Part shown: piece by piece, positions 27,173 through 60,981 of the stretch
Position numbering within the stretch: the first letter of the stretch is position 1
Layout of the letters: each line of letters begins with the position of its first letter
Translations under genes and position numbers: made by a program
Sequence record: OP953026.1
Length of the DNA: 64,000 bases
Reading direction: 5' to 3' (one strand)
The notes under the pieces: model-generated
Databases searched by the model: none
The model's input: the letters and a program-made list of their open reading frames with translations, nothing else
Told to the model about the DNA's origin: nothing

Positions 27173-27196
27173 AAAAAAATTTGAGATTTATATTAC
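27173..27196 (+). promoter_or_regulatory. Early promoter of chmA
   Basis: AAAAAAATTTGAGATTTATATTAC. Confidence 0.85.
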
Positions 27197-27268
27197 TAAA
27201 TTGAATCTAGTATACTAAGTACTTAGGTTCTTCTTGATCAAGAAACCATAATCGTAAAGGTATTTAAA

Positions 27269-29149
27269 ATGGCTGTTAACGAAAACGAAATCGGCACCGT
27301 TCAAACTCAAGCTACCGCTCCGGCTCCGCAACCCACTGCACAGCGTCAAGCTCAACGTCCTACTGGCGCGCCTGGGTCTACTACTGGCATTAACCATCTA
27401 ATGCGTCGCTCTGGTCGGCTAGATGGCTCTGATGCTCGTTCAGCAGATGCCCTACAAGTATTCACTAAAGTAAAAGAAGAAGCAATCCGCCATCAGGACC
27501 TACCTGATGACTTCGATATCCATCGTTTCGATCGTGATGCGCAACAAGTTGGTATGGCTGGTCTACTCATTGTTAAACTAGCTAAAGATATCAATGGTTC
27601 CATGAAGGCATTCGTTCGTACTCTAGTACTCGATAACCTACCTGGTACTCGCATCCGTCCCCGTACCCACAAAATCAACAATGGTCTAACTGATGACATC
27701 ATTGAAGAGAAGGTACTACCGCGTGATGTATTCACTGCTCAATACTGGAGCAAGATCGGCGAGTTCCTACGGAACCGTTACAACATCCCTGGTCTAGAAG
27801 TACTATCTGCCGGTCCACGTGCAGTGTATGCTGACTTCGACTTCAAAGATGAACTAGCTGTTAAGAACCTACTAGTTGAATCCGTTAATATCTGTGAAGA
27901 TGCTATTGCGCGTCGTAACAATGAGACTCCGTTCTCTATTGCGACCCACATCAAAGCAGAAAACGAACAGCTTACCTGCAATCTAGACTACAATGGTATT
28001 CCGGTTAAAGATAGCTGTGGTAATCCGATCCGTTCTGACCTGGTCATCTCCACTAGCCGTGGTAAGAAAACCAACGTACCTGAGAACGAGTTCTATGATA
28101 CCGATAGCCAGCTAAACCAAGTTAGTCTATTCGTAGATCTACATTGGACTCCGACCACTGGCCAGCAACAAGGCATGTTTGGCGTAACTCTACCTGGTGC
28201 AGTTCTACCTCCGCAGTTCACTCCTTACATCGTTATTACTGACGTTCGTAAGGCGTCCTGGATCCAAGCATGGACTCTAGAAATGTGGCTGTTCGCGCTT
28301 GGTAACGCGTATCGTGCAACTGCATCTCAGGCATGGGCTCGTACTCTAATGCCGAAGATCGCTACTAGTAAGATGCGTGATATTGGTGCACTTGGTTATT
28401 ACTCAGAGCTAGGTAAAGCGATTGAAACTCGCACCGAAGCATTCATGGCAGACGACAGCAACTTCGTAATGCTAATGAACAAGATGGTTAACCAGAACCC
28501 TGCATTCCAGATCGATATCGATCCAATGGGCGACAACTCAGCTATTGAGCAAGTCATCCTAGATGCAGCTGGTGGCGTAAACCAAGCTCGTGCAGTTAGC
28601 CTGATCTTCCAAGCTCTAACTAACCTATACGGCACTGATTTCCGTCAGTTCTATAACCTAGCTGAAGCTGGTCCGATTATCTTTGACAACCATCATGAAG
28701 TAGACCTCGGTCACTACACTGATGAGCATGGCGAACTAAGCGACCGTCGTGATCTTGACGTTCTAGGTGCCATGAACATGTCTGAAGGTAATGACCAAGA
28801 GTGGAAGACCTGGTATGCTACTCAGGTAGGTAATGACCACATTGTGCGTCGTATGAATAACAGTAAAGGCTTCGACAAGATGTACCTAGGTAACGTTACC
28901 TATACTGGTCGTGCTCGTCGTCTAACCTTTAACCCGAAATTCATCACCGCAATGGATGCCGCAGCAGCAGCCGCTGGTGTAACTGTAACCATGGAAAACC
29001 TAATTACCAACTTCGGTCAACAGCGCTTCGCTGGTTACACCGGTATGGGTAACATGGCTGTTTCTGGTAGTGCACAAGTTGGTATGGCTGGCAGCATGGG
29101 TCAAACTTACGGCGCTCCTTCCTATAATGCACCGGGTACCTGGTACTAA
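27269..29149 (+). CDS. chmA: Chimallin, major phage nuclear shell protein (phiKZ gp54)
   Basis: 626 aa; disordered Q/A/P-rich N-terminus, GM-rich C-terminal tail ending W-Y; position between the polymerase and nvRNAP genes. Confidence 0.92.
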
Positions 29150-29156
29150 TAGGAAA

Positions 29157-29469
29157 TACCTCGGTAGATAGGGATGTTAAATAAGTAACATCCCGATTCT
29201 AATACTGCGACCCTGGTTCACTTCGGTGATAACGGTTAGGAGTAGGTTCCGTGAAGTAATCGACTAGTGGACTTAGTCTAGGTCGACCTATCACTACACG
29301 AGGATGATAGATCACTTAACCGAAAGGAGTTACTCAAAAGGTGACGTGTGATCAAAAACTACAATGGATGGTAAATGATACTAGTGCCGGTATGCTACAG
29401 AGAAGAGCGGAGGTTAAGCTTTGTAGATGACGCTAGGATCGGGCCAGGCTCCGTTGGTGGTCCATTGTA
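29157..29469 (+). ncRNA. Candidate structured RNA in the chmA 3' region
   Basis: No ORF; 46% GC by hand count (137/300 over 29161-29460); series of helices (see findings). Confidence 0.55.
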
Positions 29470-29475
29470 AAAACT

Positions 29476-29518
29476 GATATAGCGGCTCCTTCGGGGGCCG
29501 CTTATATCTCCTTTTTTT
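29476..29518 (+). terminator. Strong intrinsic terminator
   Basis: GATATAGCGGCTCC-TTCG-GGGGCCGCTTATATC plus T-run. Confidence 0.9.
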
Positions 29519-29543
29519 GTTAATCGATAAATAGGAGTTTGGT

Positions 29544-30788
29544 ATGGGTCTTTATGCCAAAGTTGTTGATCATAATGAAGTTCATGATCAATTTACGGGT
29601 AAACGAATTTATGCCAATGATTACAATACGAGTAACTCAGATGAGAAAGAAGAATTTGATAGGCATTTCTATTCTCATTTCCAAGATTCAGAAGCAATTG
29701 AAAGTAGTGTAAGCTGTGATTGTCGAGCAATCGAAGACGCACATAAACTCGGAGTAATCTGTGATATTTGTAATACTCCAGTTGTCAATACTTCTAGCCG
29801 TCCTATCGAACCATCAATGTGGGTTCGTACACCAAAACATGTACGTAGCCTAATTAACCCACGTTTAATCATTATGCTAACCGGATATCTAGTAACTAAA
29901 GAATTCGATTTCTTAGCATATCTAACTGATACTTCTTATCGATACGATGTAGAATCTATTGGTTCTAAGGAAACACGCAGGAAAGTAGATAGGCTACTGC
30001 ATCGAGGATTTGAAAGAGGATTAAATCACTTCATTGATAATTTCAATGAGATCTTCCAATTCCTACTAGATGCAAATATTATCTCTAATAATAAATCCGA
30101 ATTCGCTCAATTCGTTGCTCAGAATAAAGATAAGTTATTCCCTAAATATTTACCAGTTCCTTCTAAACTCTGTTTCGTAGCAGAATCAACCACATCTGGT
30201 ACTTACTTAGATAAACCAATTGAAGCAGCAATTGATGCTACCTTAACCTTCGCTAGTATTGATGCATCATCTGTACCACTTAGTCCAATTAAAGCTCAGA
30301 ATAGGACTATGCGAGGACTAAGACTATATGGCCAGTTCTACGAGATCTACGCAAAATCACGAATTGCTCAAAAGCCTGGTCTTGCTCGGCGTCACATGTT
30401 TGGTGCTCGTCTCAACGCTACGGCACGTGCAGTAATCACTTCTATTAGTGACCCGCATGATTATGATGAACTACATATCCCTTGGGGGGTAGGTTGTCAA
30501 TTATTAAAGTATCATCTAACCAATAAACTAAAAGCAAAGTTTAACATGACAACTCGTGAAGCATTCTCATTTGTATATGAGAATGTACTTCAATATAACC
30601 AAATCATTGCAGATCTATTTAAAGAGCTAATTGCAGAAGCAGCCCCTTATAAAGGGATGGGTTGTACTTTTCACCGAAATCCAACGCTTCAACGTGGATC
30701 TACGCAGCAGTTCTTTATTACTAAAGTAAAAGATGACATTAATGATAATTCTATCAGCATGTCAGTTTTATGCCTTAAAGCGCCTAAT
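29544..30788 (+). CDS. nvRNAP beta-prime N-terminal subunit, exon 1 (phiKZ gp55)
   Basis: Zn-finger CDC...CDIC; FHRNPTL motif; exon ends at LKAPN and joins exon 2 to restore NADFDGD. Confidence 0.9.
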
Positions 30789-32177
30789 GGACAATTGAAT
30801 AACCAAATAAGGTAAAAGACAATGGAACAAAACGGAGTAGTGTCCGTCTTTGATCCGGCTTCATTTAAAATTGAATGGCGAGATATTCCTGGATACTCAG
30901 CTTATGAGGCTAGTAACTTAGGAACGATTCGTCATAAGCGGTTAAATAGAATATGTAATTTCTTCCTTACTAAAACATCAATTGGGACATATCTCAATAT
31001 AGGTGCAAAAAATGATGAAAAGACATCAAAAAGTAAGGGAGCGCATATTCTAGTTTGTACTGCATTCCATGGTCCATCTCCTGGACCAACATATGAAGTC
31101 AATCATAAAGACGGCAACAAACATAATAACTTACCATCCAATTTGGAATGGATGACTCGTGGTGAAAACATTGAGCATGCTTACAAAAATGGATTAAGAA
31201 AAGAAAATAGACGGGTAATTGCAACTGATGTTACCACTGGTGAAAAGACTACTTATTACTCGATGAATGAACTTGCTCGGGTATTAGGAGTTAATAAAAA
31301 TACGGTTTGGGTTATTATACGTGACCATAAGACTAAGCCGTATAGAAATAGATTCACATTTGAATTTATTACCGGTGAGACTAAGATTGCTGATCGTGAA
31401 AGTACCAAGACAGTTTATGTTTTAGACTATAAGACTAAGACATTACATGTGTTTCATAACTTAGCAGAAATGGAACTTGCACTAGGTACTAAACGTAATA
31501 AAGCCTATTACCATCTAGTTAGAGGTAGTAAGGAAATCATGGATGGTCTGGTATTCTCATATACTGCTAATCCTGAAGATTTCCCTAAATATACTCAGAA
31601 AGAAATTGAAGCCTCATTTGGAAAACCTAGTAATGGAAAAGGCACTCCAATTGAAGTAACTGACACCATCTTGAACACTACCAAAGTGTATCCAAGTATT
31701 CCACACTTTGCAAGAGATGTCGGTATTAAGCATCCGAATACTATTCGAAGAGCAATCTTTGAAAAGAATGGGGTGCTTGATAAATACCTTATTAAGTTAA
31801 TCAAGTCTAGTTCCCCCAATGAGTAATCATTGGGATGAGTTCTCTCTAATTGCTGGGATATCCTGTTAAACTAATCTACCACTGCGAGTCGAAAGACAAA
31901 GCCAAGGTTTGAAAAAGATTAGGTAGGGACAATCAGCAGCCAAGCTCCGTAACATTCCATTTAGGAATAGGAGAAGGTTCAACGACTATTACGGTATCAG
32001 GTGCGCCGGTCCTAGAAATAGGATGTAGAGTCAAGTGACTCGAAATGGGAGACACCCTACTCCGAAAGGAAGGGTGAAGATATAGTCTGGTCTGCATGGC
32101 GACATGCAGCAGGTGGTAATTATCATGTGGTAATTATACTACCGGGTATGGATTAACGACCCATACTGAACATAACG
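30789..32177 (+). mobile_element. Group I self-splicing intron with homing endonuclease
   Basis: 5' splice site after U, terminal G; P (AATTGCTGGGA), Q (AATCAGCAG), R (GTTCAACGACTA) and S (AAGATATAGTC) elements; P7 GACTA/TAGTC. Confidence 0.92.
30822..31826 (+). CDS. Intron-encoded HNH homing endonuclease, I-HmuI-like (phiKZ gp56)
   Basis: NUMOD4-like EWRDIPGY...ASNLG; HNH VNHKDGNKHNN...NLEW...ENIEH; three NUMOD1-like repeats. Confidence 0.92.
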   Translation: MEQNGVVSVFDPASFKIEWRDIPGYSAYEASNLGTIRHKRLNRICNFFLTKTSIGTYLNIGAKNDEKTSKSKGAHILVCTAFHGPSPGPTYEVNHKDGNKHNNLPSNLEWMTRGENIEHAYKNGLRKENRRVIATDVTTGEKTTYYSMNELARVLGVNKNTVWVIIRDHKTKPYRNRFTFEFITGETKIADRESTKTVYVLDYKTKTLHVFHNLAEMELALGTKRNKAYYHLVRGSKEIMDGLVFSYTANPEDFPKYTQKEIEASFGKPSNGKGTPIEVTDTILNTTKVYPSIPHFARDVGIKHPNTIRRAIFEKNGVLDKYLIKLIKSSSPNE

Positions 32178-45997: not shown

Positions 45998-46304
45998 AAT
46001 TAATATCCATCCATCTCTCAGGAATGGATATTGTCAAATTGCCTGCTTGATCTCGAAAGAGTCAAGTAAATCCTCTCTAATTGCTGGGACATCTCAATGA
46101 GACAATCAGCAGCGAAGCTTTCCAGAAATGGATTGAACGTTCAACGACTATCCGGTTACGCGGAGTACACTCAAGCGAGTGGAAATGGGAGGGACCTGAC
46201 CACCTAGGGTGAAGGTTAAGATATAGTCTGGTCTGCATGGTGACATGCAGCTGCCTGCAATACGAGAGGCGGGGTAAGCGTAGCGAACTTACCTGAACAT
46301 AACG
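45998..46304 (+). mobile_element. ORF-less group I intron (307 nt)
   Basis: P1 GGU|AAUU pairs with AAUUGCC (U.G at the splice site); P/Q/R/S elements as in intron 1; ends CTGAACATAACG. Confidence 0.9.
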
Positions 46305-47228
46305 AAGGGCGTCATCTGTAAGGTAATGGAAGATGAAGATATGCCTATTGACGAAAATGGTAATAGGGCAGATCTAATTATCTTTGGTGGTTCAACCATG
46401 CGTCGTTCAAATTATGGTCGAATTTATGAACATGGTTTTGGCGCAGCTGCACGAGATCTAGCTCAACGCCTACGCGTTGAAGCTGGACTAGATCGACATG
46501 CCAAACCAACCCAGCAACAACTAAATAGTGTAATGGGTAATACGCAATGGGTTGATTATGCATTTAAAGAACTATTAGGTTTCTATGAGATCATTGCTCC
46601 AACAATGCATAGTAAAATGATGGAACACCCAAATCCAGCAGAACATGTTAAAACAGTACTAATGGATGGATTCCCATATATCTACGCACCAGTTGATGAT
46701 CCAGTGGATCTAATGGCAGCAGTCAACAAATTAATTAATAGCGATAAGTATCGACCACACTATGGGAAGGTATCTTATCGAGATCAAGCTGGTAAGTGGG
46801 TAACAACTAAAGATAATGTCTTAATGGGTCCACTTTACATGATGCTACTAGAAAAGATTGGTGAAGACTGGTCAGCAGCAGCATCTGTAAAAACACAACC
46901 ATTTGGTCTACCTTCTAAGTTAAACAATGCTGATAGGGCTAGCACACCTGGTCGAGAAACAGCTATCCGGTCATTCGGTGAATCTGAAACTCGGTCATAT
47001 AACTGTACAGTTGGTCCAGGTCCGACTGCTGAAATCTTAGACCAAACTAATAACCCATTGGCGCATGTTGCGGTTATCGAGTCTTGGCTAACAGCAGAAA
47101 AACCTTCATCTGTACCAGTTGCAGTTGATCGTGAAAAGATTCCATTTGGTGGATCTCGCCCAGTAGCTATGTTTGATCACCTGCTTGAATGTAGTGGTAT
47201 TGCATTAGAATATGCCCCTGATCATTGA
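46305..47228 (+). CDS. nvRNAP beta C-terminal subunit, exon 2 (phiKZ gp73)
   Basis: KGVICKVMEDEDMP...ADLI; RSFGESE motif. Confidence 0.88.
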   Translation, partial: KGVICKVMEDEDMPIDENGNRADLIIFGGSTMRRSNYGRIYEHGFGAAARDLAQRLRVEAGLDRHAKPTQQQLNSVMGNTQWVDYAFKELLGFYEIIAPTMHSKMMEHPNPAEHVKTVLMDGFPYIYAPVDDPVDLMAAVNKLINSDKYRPHYGKVSYRDQAGKWVTTKDNVLMGPLYMMLLEKIGEDWSAAASVKTQPFGLPSKLNNADRASTPGRETAIRSFGESETRSYNCTVGPGPTAEILDQTNNPLAHVAVIESWLTAEKPSSVPVAVDREKIPFGGSRPVAMFDHLLECSGIALEYAPDH

Positions 47229-51330: not shown

Positions 51331-51342
51331 TGAGGTGTCTAT

Positions 51343-51534
51343 ATGGCTCGGGTATTGTTATTTTTAGTACCACTATTAATTGCATTTAGTGGATTAATAA
51401 CTTCAATTATATTTCTTGCTGCTGCTAAAACAATCAAACAAAAAGCAATGATTGTAAGTGGCTTGATTTGCAGTATGTTTACCCTTATGTTAGGGTTGTG
51501 GTTATTTAATATGATAATCATGCATATTAAATAG
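51343..51534 (+). CDS. Small membrane protein (2 predicted TM helices)
   Basis: 63 aa, GAGGT RBS. Confidence 0.65.
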   Translation: MARVLLFLVPLLIAFSGLITSIIFLAAAKTIKQKAMIVSGLICSMFTLMLGLWLFNMIIMHIK

Positions 51535-51589
51535 ACATGCTATGTAAGAACAATTGATCATTGTTCTCTAATAATAAGAGCATCCCACT

Positions 51590-51784
51590 ATGGTCTTTTT
51601 GTGTCAACTTATAGTAATAGCCCTTGTGGCTAGTATGGGATATAAAAGTTATCAGATTTATCTTTATGTCAAGTTTGACTTAGATAAAGATAGTATTAAA
51701 TCCCGGTATGTTCGCCAAAAGACACTGCTTGTTGTTTTATATGGCTTCTTTGCTTTATTCCCATTAGGATATCTGATGGTTTAA
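51590..51784 (+). CDS. Small membrane protein (2 predicted TM helices)
   Basis: 64 aa with two hydrophobic segments. Confidence 0.6.
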   Translation: MVFLCQLIVIALVASMGYKSYQIYLYVKFDLDKDSIKSRYVRQKTLLVVLYGFFALFPLGYLMV

Positions 51785-51879
51785 TAAATATTACCCCGCC
51801 TTTTATTGGTGGGGTAATATGCCATCTTTATATCAAAAGACTTTTGAATATCATATCCCACCCTGATAAGGAGTAGACC

Positions 51880-52023
51880 ATGCAAGTACGAATTGAGGTA
51901 ATCAATAGTGAGGGCAATCTGGATATCGAAGAACGGGTTGATATCCGCCCAATGAAGGGGTTAACGGCCTGGATGGTCGCTCTAGCTATCAAAGGTCTTG
52001 TAGCTAGCTTTGCACGTAAGTAA
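51880..52023 (+). CDS. 47-aa protein with a hydrophobic C-terminal helix
   Basis: TAAGGAG RBS; MQVRIEVINSEGNLDIEERVDIRPMKGLTAWMVALAIKGLVASFARK*; ends at the terminator 52029-52075. Confidence 0.7.
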   Translation: MQVRIEVINSEGNLDIEERVDIRPMKGLTAWMVALAIKGLVASFARK

Positions 52024-52073
52024 GGCGACATAAACCCCTCTCCACATGGAGAGGGGCCTGTCTTTATTTTTTT

Positions 52074-60510: not shown

Positions 60511-60878
60511 TATATCAGTGGAAGCGCCGAGGAGGATATGAATGTTCATCTGTTGGTGACAAAAGATTCTCGGCTCTTTACGCAAGGCTTCCTGATGGCA
60601 GAACAATTGAGGAAGCTTGGCAGTTAGATTGTAAAGGATATCGCATATACTCCAACCATTGGAAAGCTGGTAAAGGAAAACCACCACTAGACGGGTATAA
60701 TCCCAAATATGATGATTATAAAAATCTGTGGAAAGTATGGGCGGTATCTAATAAACATCTAATGGATGAATTGCGTCAGAATGCAAAAGAACATGATAAC
60801 TATCTTTCTGATGTTTTTGCTTCTACTGATATTTCACAGGCACGTGCTCTAGCAGAACTACTTAATGAAGGATATTAA
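60498..60878 (+). CDS. Start-less 126-codon ORF (NADAR-like) in the -1 frame of gp82
   Basis: ...VIYQWKRRGGYECSSVGDKRFSALYARLPDGRTIEEAWQLDCKG...STDISQARALAELLNEGY*; no ATG/GTG/TTG near the 5' end. Confidence 0.65.
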   Translation, partial: EPKVIYQWKRRGGYECSSVGDKRFSALYARLPDGRTIEEAWQLDCKGYRIYSNHWKAGKGKPPLDGYNPKYDDYKNLWKVWAVSNKHLMDELRQNAKEHDNYLSDVFASTDISQARALAELLNEGY

Positions 60879-60946
60879 AAAATGGAAGGTATTCCTAATT
60901 AAATATTATCAATTGATCATTACTGCTAACATAAACTTCGACACAT

Positions 60947-60979
60947 CATAAAACCCTCCCATTACGGGAGGGTTTATTT
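60947..60979. terminator. Bidirectional terminator
   Basis: AAACCCTCCC-ATTAC-GGGAGGGTTT. Confidence 0.85.
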
Positions 60980-60981
60980 CG

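Follow-up and report, generated by a model that had tools for sequence, protein, structure and literature searches.

A structured, modular non-coding RNA between the chimallin and RNA polymerase genes of phiKZ-type phages

Positions 29157-29469 of the window (the whole 64,000-nt stretch of record OP953026.1 analysed here) encode on the + strand a non-coding RNA of three independently folding domains, D1, D2 and D3. The element lies between the stop codons of chmA, the gene of the nuclear shell protein chimallin, and an intrinsic-terminator-like hairpin, beyond which begins gp55, the gene for the N-terminal part of the beta-prime subunit of the non-virion RNA polymerase (nvRNAP). It is very probably a genuine structured RNA family new to databases. 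Between the chmA stop and the terminator, related phages carry different modules and have exchanged them, so that this interval forms a hypervariable cassette site. As for function, the reading favoured here, with a probability of roughly 0.35, is that of a partner-binding RNA that would govern the 3′-end fate of the chmA-nvRNAP transcript. The original prediction of a large, structured RNA element without coding function, on the same strand as chmA, is upheld by the fold, by covariation and by the lack of a match to any known family; it had remarked neither on the three autonomous modules, nor on the hypervariable site with horizontally exchanged contents, nor on the position of the element as a leader of the nvRNAP beta-prime gene.

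A three-domain RNA on the chmA strand

The element measures 313 nt at 45.4% GC, in line with the ~310 nt at 46% first put forward, and the wider interval 29150-29543 (45% GC) contains no conserved open reading frame (ORF), the longest being of 24-38 aa and differing among homologues. The accompanying statement that other intergenic DNA is AT-rich holds for the window's remaining ORF-free stretches of 150 nt or more, at 26-40% GC, and fails for one of them, 46004-46325, which reaches 48% and holds a group I intron; the second intron-bearing ORF-free stretch has 40%. Small ORFs over the element are not conserved in relatives, and the ‘hypothetical protein’ coding sequences placed over it in the GenBank records of HPP-Temi (L007:574-681, 827-1015) and HHBS36_1 (L009:574-681, 826-1014) are therefore probably spurious. 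The phiKZ record carries no annotation between PHIKZ054 and PHIKZ055, and the phage records inspected have no RNA annotation on the element.

The + strand folds with a minimum free energy (MFE) of -122.4 kcal/mol (z = -3.8), which 0 of 100 dinucleotide shuffles equal; the fold of the - strand is weaker (z = -2.6), and the three domains without the terminator give z = -2.7. The consensus fold, computed with RNAalifold on ten Phikzvirus and Pawinskivirus sequences, comprises 108 pairs, 8 of them with double compensatory changes among these close sequences, and resolves into three separately closed domains followed by the terminator. Across Phikzvirus, Pawinskivirus, PhiPA3 and three uncultured Psa21-like phages, covariation backs nearly every + strand helix. 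The checks suggested with the original prediction, namely folding against shuffles and conservation and covariation in relatives, thus came out in its favour, the latter two strongly. The parts of the fold are the following.

29160-29302, + strand: D1, a multibranch domain (RNAalifold consensus, compensatory changes in 5 pairs)
29310-29353, + strand: D2, a three-way junction (consensus fold and an alignment including PhiPA3)
29360-29469, + strand: D3, the core module of 110 nt (model R1 and alignment A7)
29406-29455, + strand: putative pseudoknot or kissing contact of loop L3 with the 3′ junction of D3 (7 contiguous pairs)
29476-29518, + strand: intrinsic-terminator-like hairpin (sequence reading, MFE and consensus folds)

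Among the helices originally listed, GGGATGTTA/TAACATCCC (29171-29179/29186-29194), TCAC-UUCG-GTGA (29218-29229), TCGACTAG/CTAGGTCGA, GATCAC/GTGATC around CC-GAAA-GG, TACAATGGA/TCCATTGTA (29360-29368/29461-29469), CTAGTG/CGCTAG and CTACAGAG/CTTTGTAG are all present and recovered in the consensus. The proposed CTATCA/TGATAG helix is absent from it, since its bases are taken by two covariation-supported helices, CUCG/CGAG (29160-29163/29299-29302) and GUGAAG/CU-AUCAC, and the AAAAACT linkers noted around the last domain are not conserved in relatives.

D1 is closed by the 4-bp long-range helix CUCG/CGAG and contains the hairpin at 29171-29194, a UUCG-capped arm and a long bent arm with GUGAAG/CU-AUCAC at its base. 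The covariance model of this domain, R2, aligns PhiPA3 over the full length (44.5 bits, E = 8e-10), the distal arm of that phage carrying a ~157-nt insertion (L002:3099-3260). In PA1C the first ~45 nt of D1 are nearer to PhiPA3 and the remainder is phiKZ-like, as read by eye from the alignment. In D2, GAUCAC/GUGAUC closes the CC-GAAA-GG hairpin and a GUUAC/GUGAC hairpin. This domain is found in phiKZ-type and PA1C-type phages, in phiHQ and in PhiPA3; with the latter included, 98.6% of alignment cells are paired, compared with 23-56% in slid controls, and 4 pairs show double changes.

D3 is built from P1 (29360-29368/29461-29469, 9 bp), P2 (29377-29386/29431-29440) and P3 (29395-29402/29419-29426), with an asymmetric purine-rich internal loop between P2 and P3, an invariant 16-nt loop (L3, 29403-29418) and a 21-nt 3′ junction that is invariant over 29444-29460. 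In the model-guided alignment A7 (12 sequences from 3 lineages), 98.1% of cells fall in standard pairs, a share that drops to 31-57% once partners are shifted by 1-3 columns; both partners have changed in 21 of the 36 pairs, and covariation as high as that observed appears in 0 of 500 shuffles. Such both-side changes affect 8 of the 9 pairs of P1, 8 of 10 in P2 and 5 of 8 in P3. G-U pairs occupy 44 of 431 cells, and as these would be A-C mismatches on the opposite strand, the + strand is the RNA; this and the stronger + strand fold agree with the strand preference stated at the outset. In alignment A5, 53 columns are invariant, mostly in loop and junction, among them UGGUAAA (5′ junction), GAGCGGAGG (L3) and CCAGGCUCCGUUGGUGG (3′ junction). 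Helices that have changed nearly throughout between lineages, around unpaired nucleotides that have not, are the signature of a tertiary core with a specific contact, of the sort known from aptamers, ribozymes and protein-binding sites.

The putative pseudoknot would pair AGCGGAG (29406-29412) with CUCCGUU (29449-29455), a duplex of -12.2 kcal/mol (P ~0.03-0.05 in shuffles); both strands are invariant in 12/12 sequences, and covariation therefore speaks neither for nor against it. An isolated pair within the internal loop (columns 35-71) covaries, being G-C in 10 sequences and A-U in 2. The loop has a kink-turn (K-turn)-like layout, YCN-RA-G / AYGA, which is non-canonical in 5 of the 12 sequences; position 1b is occupied by G in 7 sequences and by A in the other 5, and the window has GU in place of GA. 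L3 holds GGAGGU (29409-29414), a perfect Shine-Dalgarno (SD) core, and CUCC in its putative pseudoknot partner resembles an anti-SD sequence, a likeness that may be connected with the ribosome or be fortuitous. A start codon following GGAGGU was considered and dropped, neither AUG nor UUG being conserved, and so was base pairing between the D3 junction and the ribosome-binding site of gp55, which amounts to 9 bp in the window and is not conserved in PA1C or in the uncultured genome L040.

The terminator consists of a 14-bp hairpin (arms 29476-29489/29494-29508) with a UUCG loop, a UCC spacer and a run of seven U residues (29512-29518); a simple terminator scan missed it because the U-run starts 3 nt after the extended stem. 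Hairpin and U7 are kept in every relative examined, including phages in which the site is empty. The gap between D3 and the terminator is 6-8 nt in all three lineages, and the modules 5′ of D3 vary. Constrained folding of five lineage representatives revealed no conserved alternative pairing between D3 and the terminator.

That no known RNA class could be matched to the element, as first reported, is borne out by the Rfam, ARAGORN and group I searches. In the whole window Rfam 15, at the gathering thresholds, recognises only two group I introns, both located elsewhere (85.3 and 84.2 bits), and a sensitive scan of 29100-29560 returned only noise at E = 3-10, mostly over the terminator. A group I intron was rejected: RF00028 gives no match here at E <= 10, against 84-85 bits for the real introns of the window, and since the element sits after tandem stop codons there is no coding exon for splicing to restore. 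A tRNA or tmRNA was rejected as well, ARAGORN finding 0 genes in 29000-29700. Blastn against E. coli genomes and plasmids gave no match to the element. A scan of IMG/VR with the D2 motif returned only PhiPA3, PA7 and two chance matches inside long ORFs (L018, L019); a metagenome scan with the D3 motif returned one true new copy (L051) and 10 chance matches, and a scan of bacterial genome contigs yielded 15 motif matches in unrelated metagenome-assembled genomes, none confirmed by model R1. The element is unmentioned in the paper texts searched (phiKZ and 201phi2-1 transcriptomes, Grad-seq, antisense oligomers (ASO), ChmC enhanced crosslinking and immunoprecipitation (eCLIP) and two 2026 non-coding RNA (ncRNA)-mining preprints). 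According to the ChmC eCLIP text, binding to mRNAs is broad and peaks close to start codons; the chmA 3′ untranslated region (UTR) does not figure there (PMC11077065). Nothing in that text backs the initial suggestions of a ChmC ligand or of an mRNA localisation or export signal, which stay conjectural. Of the readings initially offered, that of a new RNA class survives best.

An exchangeable cassette site behind chmA

Over 29150-29520 the window matches Pseudomonas phages KTN4, fnug and OMKO1 at 100% identity and phiKZ at 98.9%; judged by this similarity, the source of the window is a phiKZ-type phage. The element occurs in 57 phage records, with one copy per genome, at 95-100% identity within Phikzvirus and ~85% in the Pawinskivirus group (PA1C, PS119XW, HPP-Temi, HHBS36_1, BRkr). 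phiHQ carries only its 3′ part, and the copy of PhiPA3 is partial, the ~100 nt between D2 and the terminator being not detectably D3. D3 is also present in two uncultured IMG/VR genomes (L030, L040), whose ChmA is only ~43% identical to that of phiKZ, and in the metagenome contig L051.

The order of chmA and the RNA polymerase (RNAP) beta-prime gene is conserved in 25 of 25 full-length IMG/VR loci and in the isolates examined, with spacers of 12-874 nt. Within the Psa21/D6-like clade the flanks align, with the end of chmA and TAAGAC on one side and AGTTAGATAGG and the terminator on the other. The contents of the site are the following.

D6: ~15 nt between the conserved flanks, no module
L030 and L051: D3 alone
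L040: an unrelated 76-nt module, Y, and D3
L025, L028 and L029: other modules
Psa21: a ~300-nt module, X, and another module
phiHQ: X in place of D1, then D2 and D3
The window (phiKZ-type): D1, D2 and D3

D6, Noxifer and several uncultured phages have only ~80 nt and no module, with the same terminator and gene order, and the element is thus not required for the basic design of the operon. Module X (phiHQ L010:1197-1503; Psa21 L013:4257-4560) is ~300 nt long, with long conserved blocks and z = -2.7; it is common to a P. aeruginosa phage (phiHQ) and a P. syringae phage (Psa21) and has no Rfam match. The cassette of L029 had been considered by eye as a relative of D1 (GUAGAUAG and a hairpin); model R2 does not detect it, and no homology with D1 is therefore claimed.

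Between the window and PA1C, DNA identity is 80-97% in the element and 42-65% in the flanking genes, and between PA1C and PhiPA3 it is 65-85% in the flanks and 13-60% in the elements. On these identities, the relationships of the cassettes conflict with those of the flanking genes. The mosaic D1 of PA1C suggests homologous recombination between related elements in co-infection, not insertion of a discrete mobile element. This bears on the idea of a selfish or catalytic RNA, i.e., a degenerate ORF-less intron or a small self-cleaving ribozyme spreading between co-infecting phages. Sharp identity boundaries against the flanks, mobile group I introns with an HNH endonuclease 1.3 kb downstream, the UUCG and GAAA loops and the possible pseudoknot would all be compatible with such an origin. 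It is nevertheless very improbable, as no group I or ribozyme match appears even at E <= 10, models R1 and R2 find no other copy in the window, conserved target-site repeats are lacking, and the phiKZ-like tract of PA1C appears to begin inside D1, which points to recombination.

Nearly all non-homologous cassettes at the site fold better than shuffles (z = -1.7 to -5.4), and the 8 related loci scanned gave 0 Rfam matches at E <= 1. It could be argued that the site simply harbours a generic structured spacer, where any stable fold shields the 3′ end of the chmA mRNA or insulates the terminator, no specific partner is involved and modules replace one another neutrally. The stability of the non-homologous cassettes and the existence of phages without a module agree with this explanation, but it accounts neither for the ~50 invariant, mostly unpaired D3 positions kept across lineages with ~43% identical ChmA, nor for the cassette identity of 85-97% between phages whose flanks share only 42-65%, and is considered unlikely.

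Transcription of the locus and possible functions

The following features frame the element.

27189-27196, + strand: TATATTAC motif upstream of chmA, a candidate promoter element (motif match)
27269-29149, + strand: chmA (chimallin, nuclear shell protein; PHIKZ054 homologue; PF25677, E = 0, 1122.7 bits)
29533-30815, + strand: SD and first exon of the nvRNAP beta-prime N-terminal gene (gp55, PHIKZ055 homologue; PHROG 2987)

The chmA product also corresponds to PHROG 4795 and shows 99.7% in tblastn against phiKZ; the gene ends in the tandem stops TAA TAG. The SD of gp55 is AGGAG (29533-29537), and its ORF (29544-30815) starts with an ATG 25 nt past the U-run of the terminator. This ORF spans only positions 1-418 of the 478-position PHROG profile, and 3′ of it lie an HNH/NUMOD homing-endonuclease ORF (30822-31826) and a group I ribozyme core (31789-32109, 85.3 bits); 30816-32109 thus appears to be an intron with its own endonuclease that splits the nvRNAP beta-prime gene, the last exon being located downstream (PHIKZ056.1 in phiKZ). 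A second group I intron (46022-46250; RF00028, 84.2 bits) is found in the ORF-free stretch of 48% GC at 46004-46325. The composition of chmA (27200-29150) is 44-53% GC, against 26-40% in neighbouring genes and spacers, and the element matches chmA, not the genome. Three further stretches without an ORF of at least 80 aa, 51331-52073 (743 nt), 60511-60981 (471 nt) and 1-866 (866 nt), have 35-38% GC and give no Rfam match at the gathering threshold.

The TATATTAC motif, which we take to be the core of the phiKZ early promoter, occurs 8 times in the window, and 7 of these copies are on the + strand (5207, 11020, 16206, 27189, 32640, 36230, 39594). Despite a total count not above chance, this strand bias fits a one-directional array of early promoters. 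No + strand copy lies between 27189 and 32640. PHIKZ054 has an early-type primary transcription start site and a middle secondary one and is a member of a six-gene operon (Wicke 2020, PMC8244752), and the nvRNAP subunits, gp55 included, are early gene products (PMC4666361). As only 25 nt separate the U-run from the ATG and no early-promoter motif occurs between the copies at 27189 and 32640, gp55 must presumably be reached by read-through of the terminator; and as no terminator stands between the chmA stop and the element and the conserved hairpin-U7 comes directly after it, the element must be co-transcribed with chmA. It probably has two roles, as 3′ UTR where the chmA mRNA is terminated and as intercistronic leader where transcription reads through.

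In the favoured reading, the element would be transcribed with chmA from the early promoter, forming the 3′ end of a very abundant chmA mRNA whenever the terminator fires and a leader within chmA-nvRNAP transcripts whenever it is read through. D3 would act as a tertiary-folded platform, with a bent P2-P3 arm and a loop-junction pseudoknot, that binds a specific protein or small ligand. Binding of this partner would determine the fate of the transcript 3′ end, through resistance to 3′-to-5′ decay or processing and/or passage into the RNAP genes, and the ChmA : nvRNAP ratio would be set in this manner, with D1 and D2 as accessory modules stacked upstream of D3. D3 is read as such a platform because it always adjoins the terminator that parts a very abundant product from RNAP subunits.

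Several observations weigh against this reading. D3 and the terminator fold independently, and no conserved pairing links them. The phages with an empty site indicate that the element is needed neither for read-through nor for chmA expression in general. A patchy, horizontally exchanged distribution suits an accessory role in conflict with the host at least as well, and the fixed place by the terminator could merely mark where recombination adds modules. Finally, the main texts of the phiKZ transcriptome papers do not mention the region.

A trans-acting decoy, although itself tentative, ranks nearly as likely as the cis mechanism at the 3′ end. According to this alternative, the 3′ UTR or a processed piece of it (D3 and the terminator, ~150 nt) would build up as a stable RNA from the most abundant early transcript and serve as a decoy, sponge or aptamer. 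Its target would be a factor of the host or the phage, for instance an enzyme of RNA decay, an RNA chaperone, a factor associated with ribosomes or a defence protein that senses RNA, and the modules would be interchangeable RNA accessory genes in the phage-host conflict. Such a role agrees with the hypervariability of the cassette (empty, D3, Y and D3, X and W, others) between conserved flanks of close relatives, with the discordance between cassettes and flanks in the phiKZ/PA1C and PA1C/PhiPA3 comparisons, with the substitution of D1 by X in phiHQ, and with loops that stay invariant while helices turn over, as expected of a surface recognised by a partner. UTR-derived ncRNAs are, moreover, documented in phiKZ (PMC8545117; PMC10914365). 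On the other hand, all known copies lie at one and the same place, in cis to chmA and the terminator; there is no record of a processed species, and manual inspection of Grad-seq data gave only two other ncRNA candidates (PMC8545117). Similarity to E. coli chromosomal RNAs or plasmids was not found, and bacterial genomes gave only chance matches, which leaves no evidence of cellular-RNA mimicry.

A more specific form of sponge, directed at RsmA/CsrA, had been suggested from a count of nine GGA triplets. The actual count is 8, against 6.6 +/- 2.2 expected (P = 0.32). Some GGA do lie in or near loops, e.g., in L3 (GCGGAGG) and at 29302 (ACGAGGAUG), but PA1C-type phages have lost the best CsrA-like site (29302), neither PA1C nor PhiPA3 conserves the GGA sites, and the GGA of L3 falls within the putative pseudoknot, so that this suggestion is hardly credible.

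The anatomy of D3 also invites comparison with a ligand-sensing riboswitch or attenuator, in which occupancy of the aptamer would alter termination and hence nvRNAP expression. A closed P1, a bent arm, a putative loop-junction pseudoknot and an invariant core are aptamer-like, and this conserved core stands directly upstream of an intrinsic terminator, 6-8 nt away, beyond which an RNAP gene begins with its SD and ATG. However, a conserved antiterminator or mutually exclusive terminator pairing is present in none of five sequences, P1 is a stable 9-bp helix, no Rfam riboswitch matches, and related phages run the same operon without D3, all of which makes a switch of this kind improbable.

It is tempting to speculate that the chimallin 3′ UTR serves Pseudomonas nucleus-forming phages as a hypervariable docking site for exchanged RNA accessory genes, and that at least one of these, D3, represents a new class of aptamer or ribozyme grade, with an invariant tertiary core, which neutralises a host RNA-directed factor or senses a signal controlling the phage RNAP. 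If this were true, D3 would travel on the mRNA that the phage makes first and in greatest amount and that leaves the protected compartment. The phage nucleus shields from DNA-targeting immunity, and exported mRNAs are the exposed layer; an exchangeable module on the earliest of them would therefore occupy a natural place for RNA-level host takeover, counter-defence or RNAP control. phiKZ is the model nucleus-forming phage and chmA its most studied gene, and yet the RNA directly behind chmA is unannotated in the records inspected. At 110 nt, with its invariant core and three covarying helices, D3 makes a compact target suited to the tools already in use for phiKZ (antisense oligomers, Cas13a-assisted editing, Grad-seq, crosslinking and immunoprecipitation (CLIP)). 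Phage engineering may disturb the element wherever chmA or gp55 is tagged or replaced.

Relation to known RNA systems

The UTR-derived ncRNA candidates 3′UTR_PHIKZ298 and 5′UTR_p40 (Gerovac 2021, PMC8545117; Putzeys 2024, PMC10914365) provide a comparison within the same phage. Like them, the element is structured, has no ORF, has transcript and terminator in common with a neighbouring gene and is conserved in the genus. These candidates are 70-200 nt long, have two stems and were found experimentally, whereas the element has ~310 nt and three multibranch domains; unlike them, it is unmentioned in those texts, covaries across genera and occupies a cassette site with alternative modules. It has the anatomy of a small RNA derived from a 3′ UTR, lying on the same strand, 3′ of the stop codon, and ending at the intrinsic terminator of the parent mRNA.

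The features of more distant systems compared here are established knowledge. The rplL-rpoB intergenic attenuator of E. coli determines how much of an abundant upstream product is made relative to RNAP subunits. It resembles the present locus in its ~300-nt untranslated spacer, its partial terminator and the placing of an abundant product before RNAP subunit genes in one operon. The rplL-rpoB region is, however, neither modular nor horizontally exchanged and has no relation to the element in sequence or structure, and the polymerases here are, unlike those of E. coli, phage-encoded, with transcription uncoupled from translation. The put RNA of phage HK022 is likewise a cis-acting phage structure ahead of terminators that have to be read through for downstream genes to be expressed, and the element is similarly placed upstream of a terminator. 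The put RNA consists of two simple stem-loops of ~70 nt, acts on host RNAP and has no homology with the element. D6, Noxifer and others have the terminator and the RNAP gene without a module; with terminator and gene order unchanged in these relatives, any antitermination by D3 would not be obligatory.

The exonuclease-resistant RNAs (xrRNAs) and dumbbells of flaviviruses are comparable as tandem, independent 3′-UTR modules of variable number and type, with conserved loops, covarying helices and pseudoknots (putative in the element). They belong to eukaryotic RNA viruses and block a 5′-to-3′ exonuclease that Pseudomonas does not have, and homology is absent. The SAM-I and THF-I riboswitches share with D3 closure by P1, an internal-loop bend that brings a hairpin loop to a junction strand (putative in D3), an invariant core and an adjacent terminator; unlike them, D3 has neither an Rfam match nor an antiterminator alternative, and its internal loop is not a canonical K-turn in 5/12 sequences. 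The element belongs to a broadly familiar kind, the UTR-embedded viral RNA elements, and forms within it a new structured-RNA family or, more exactly, several; its modules are unusual in being interchangeable at one fixed site.

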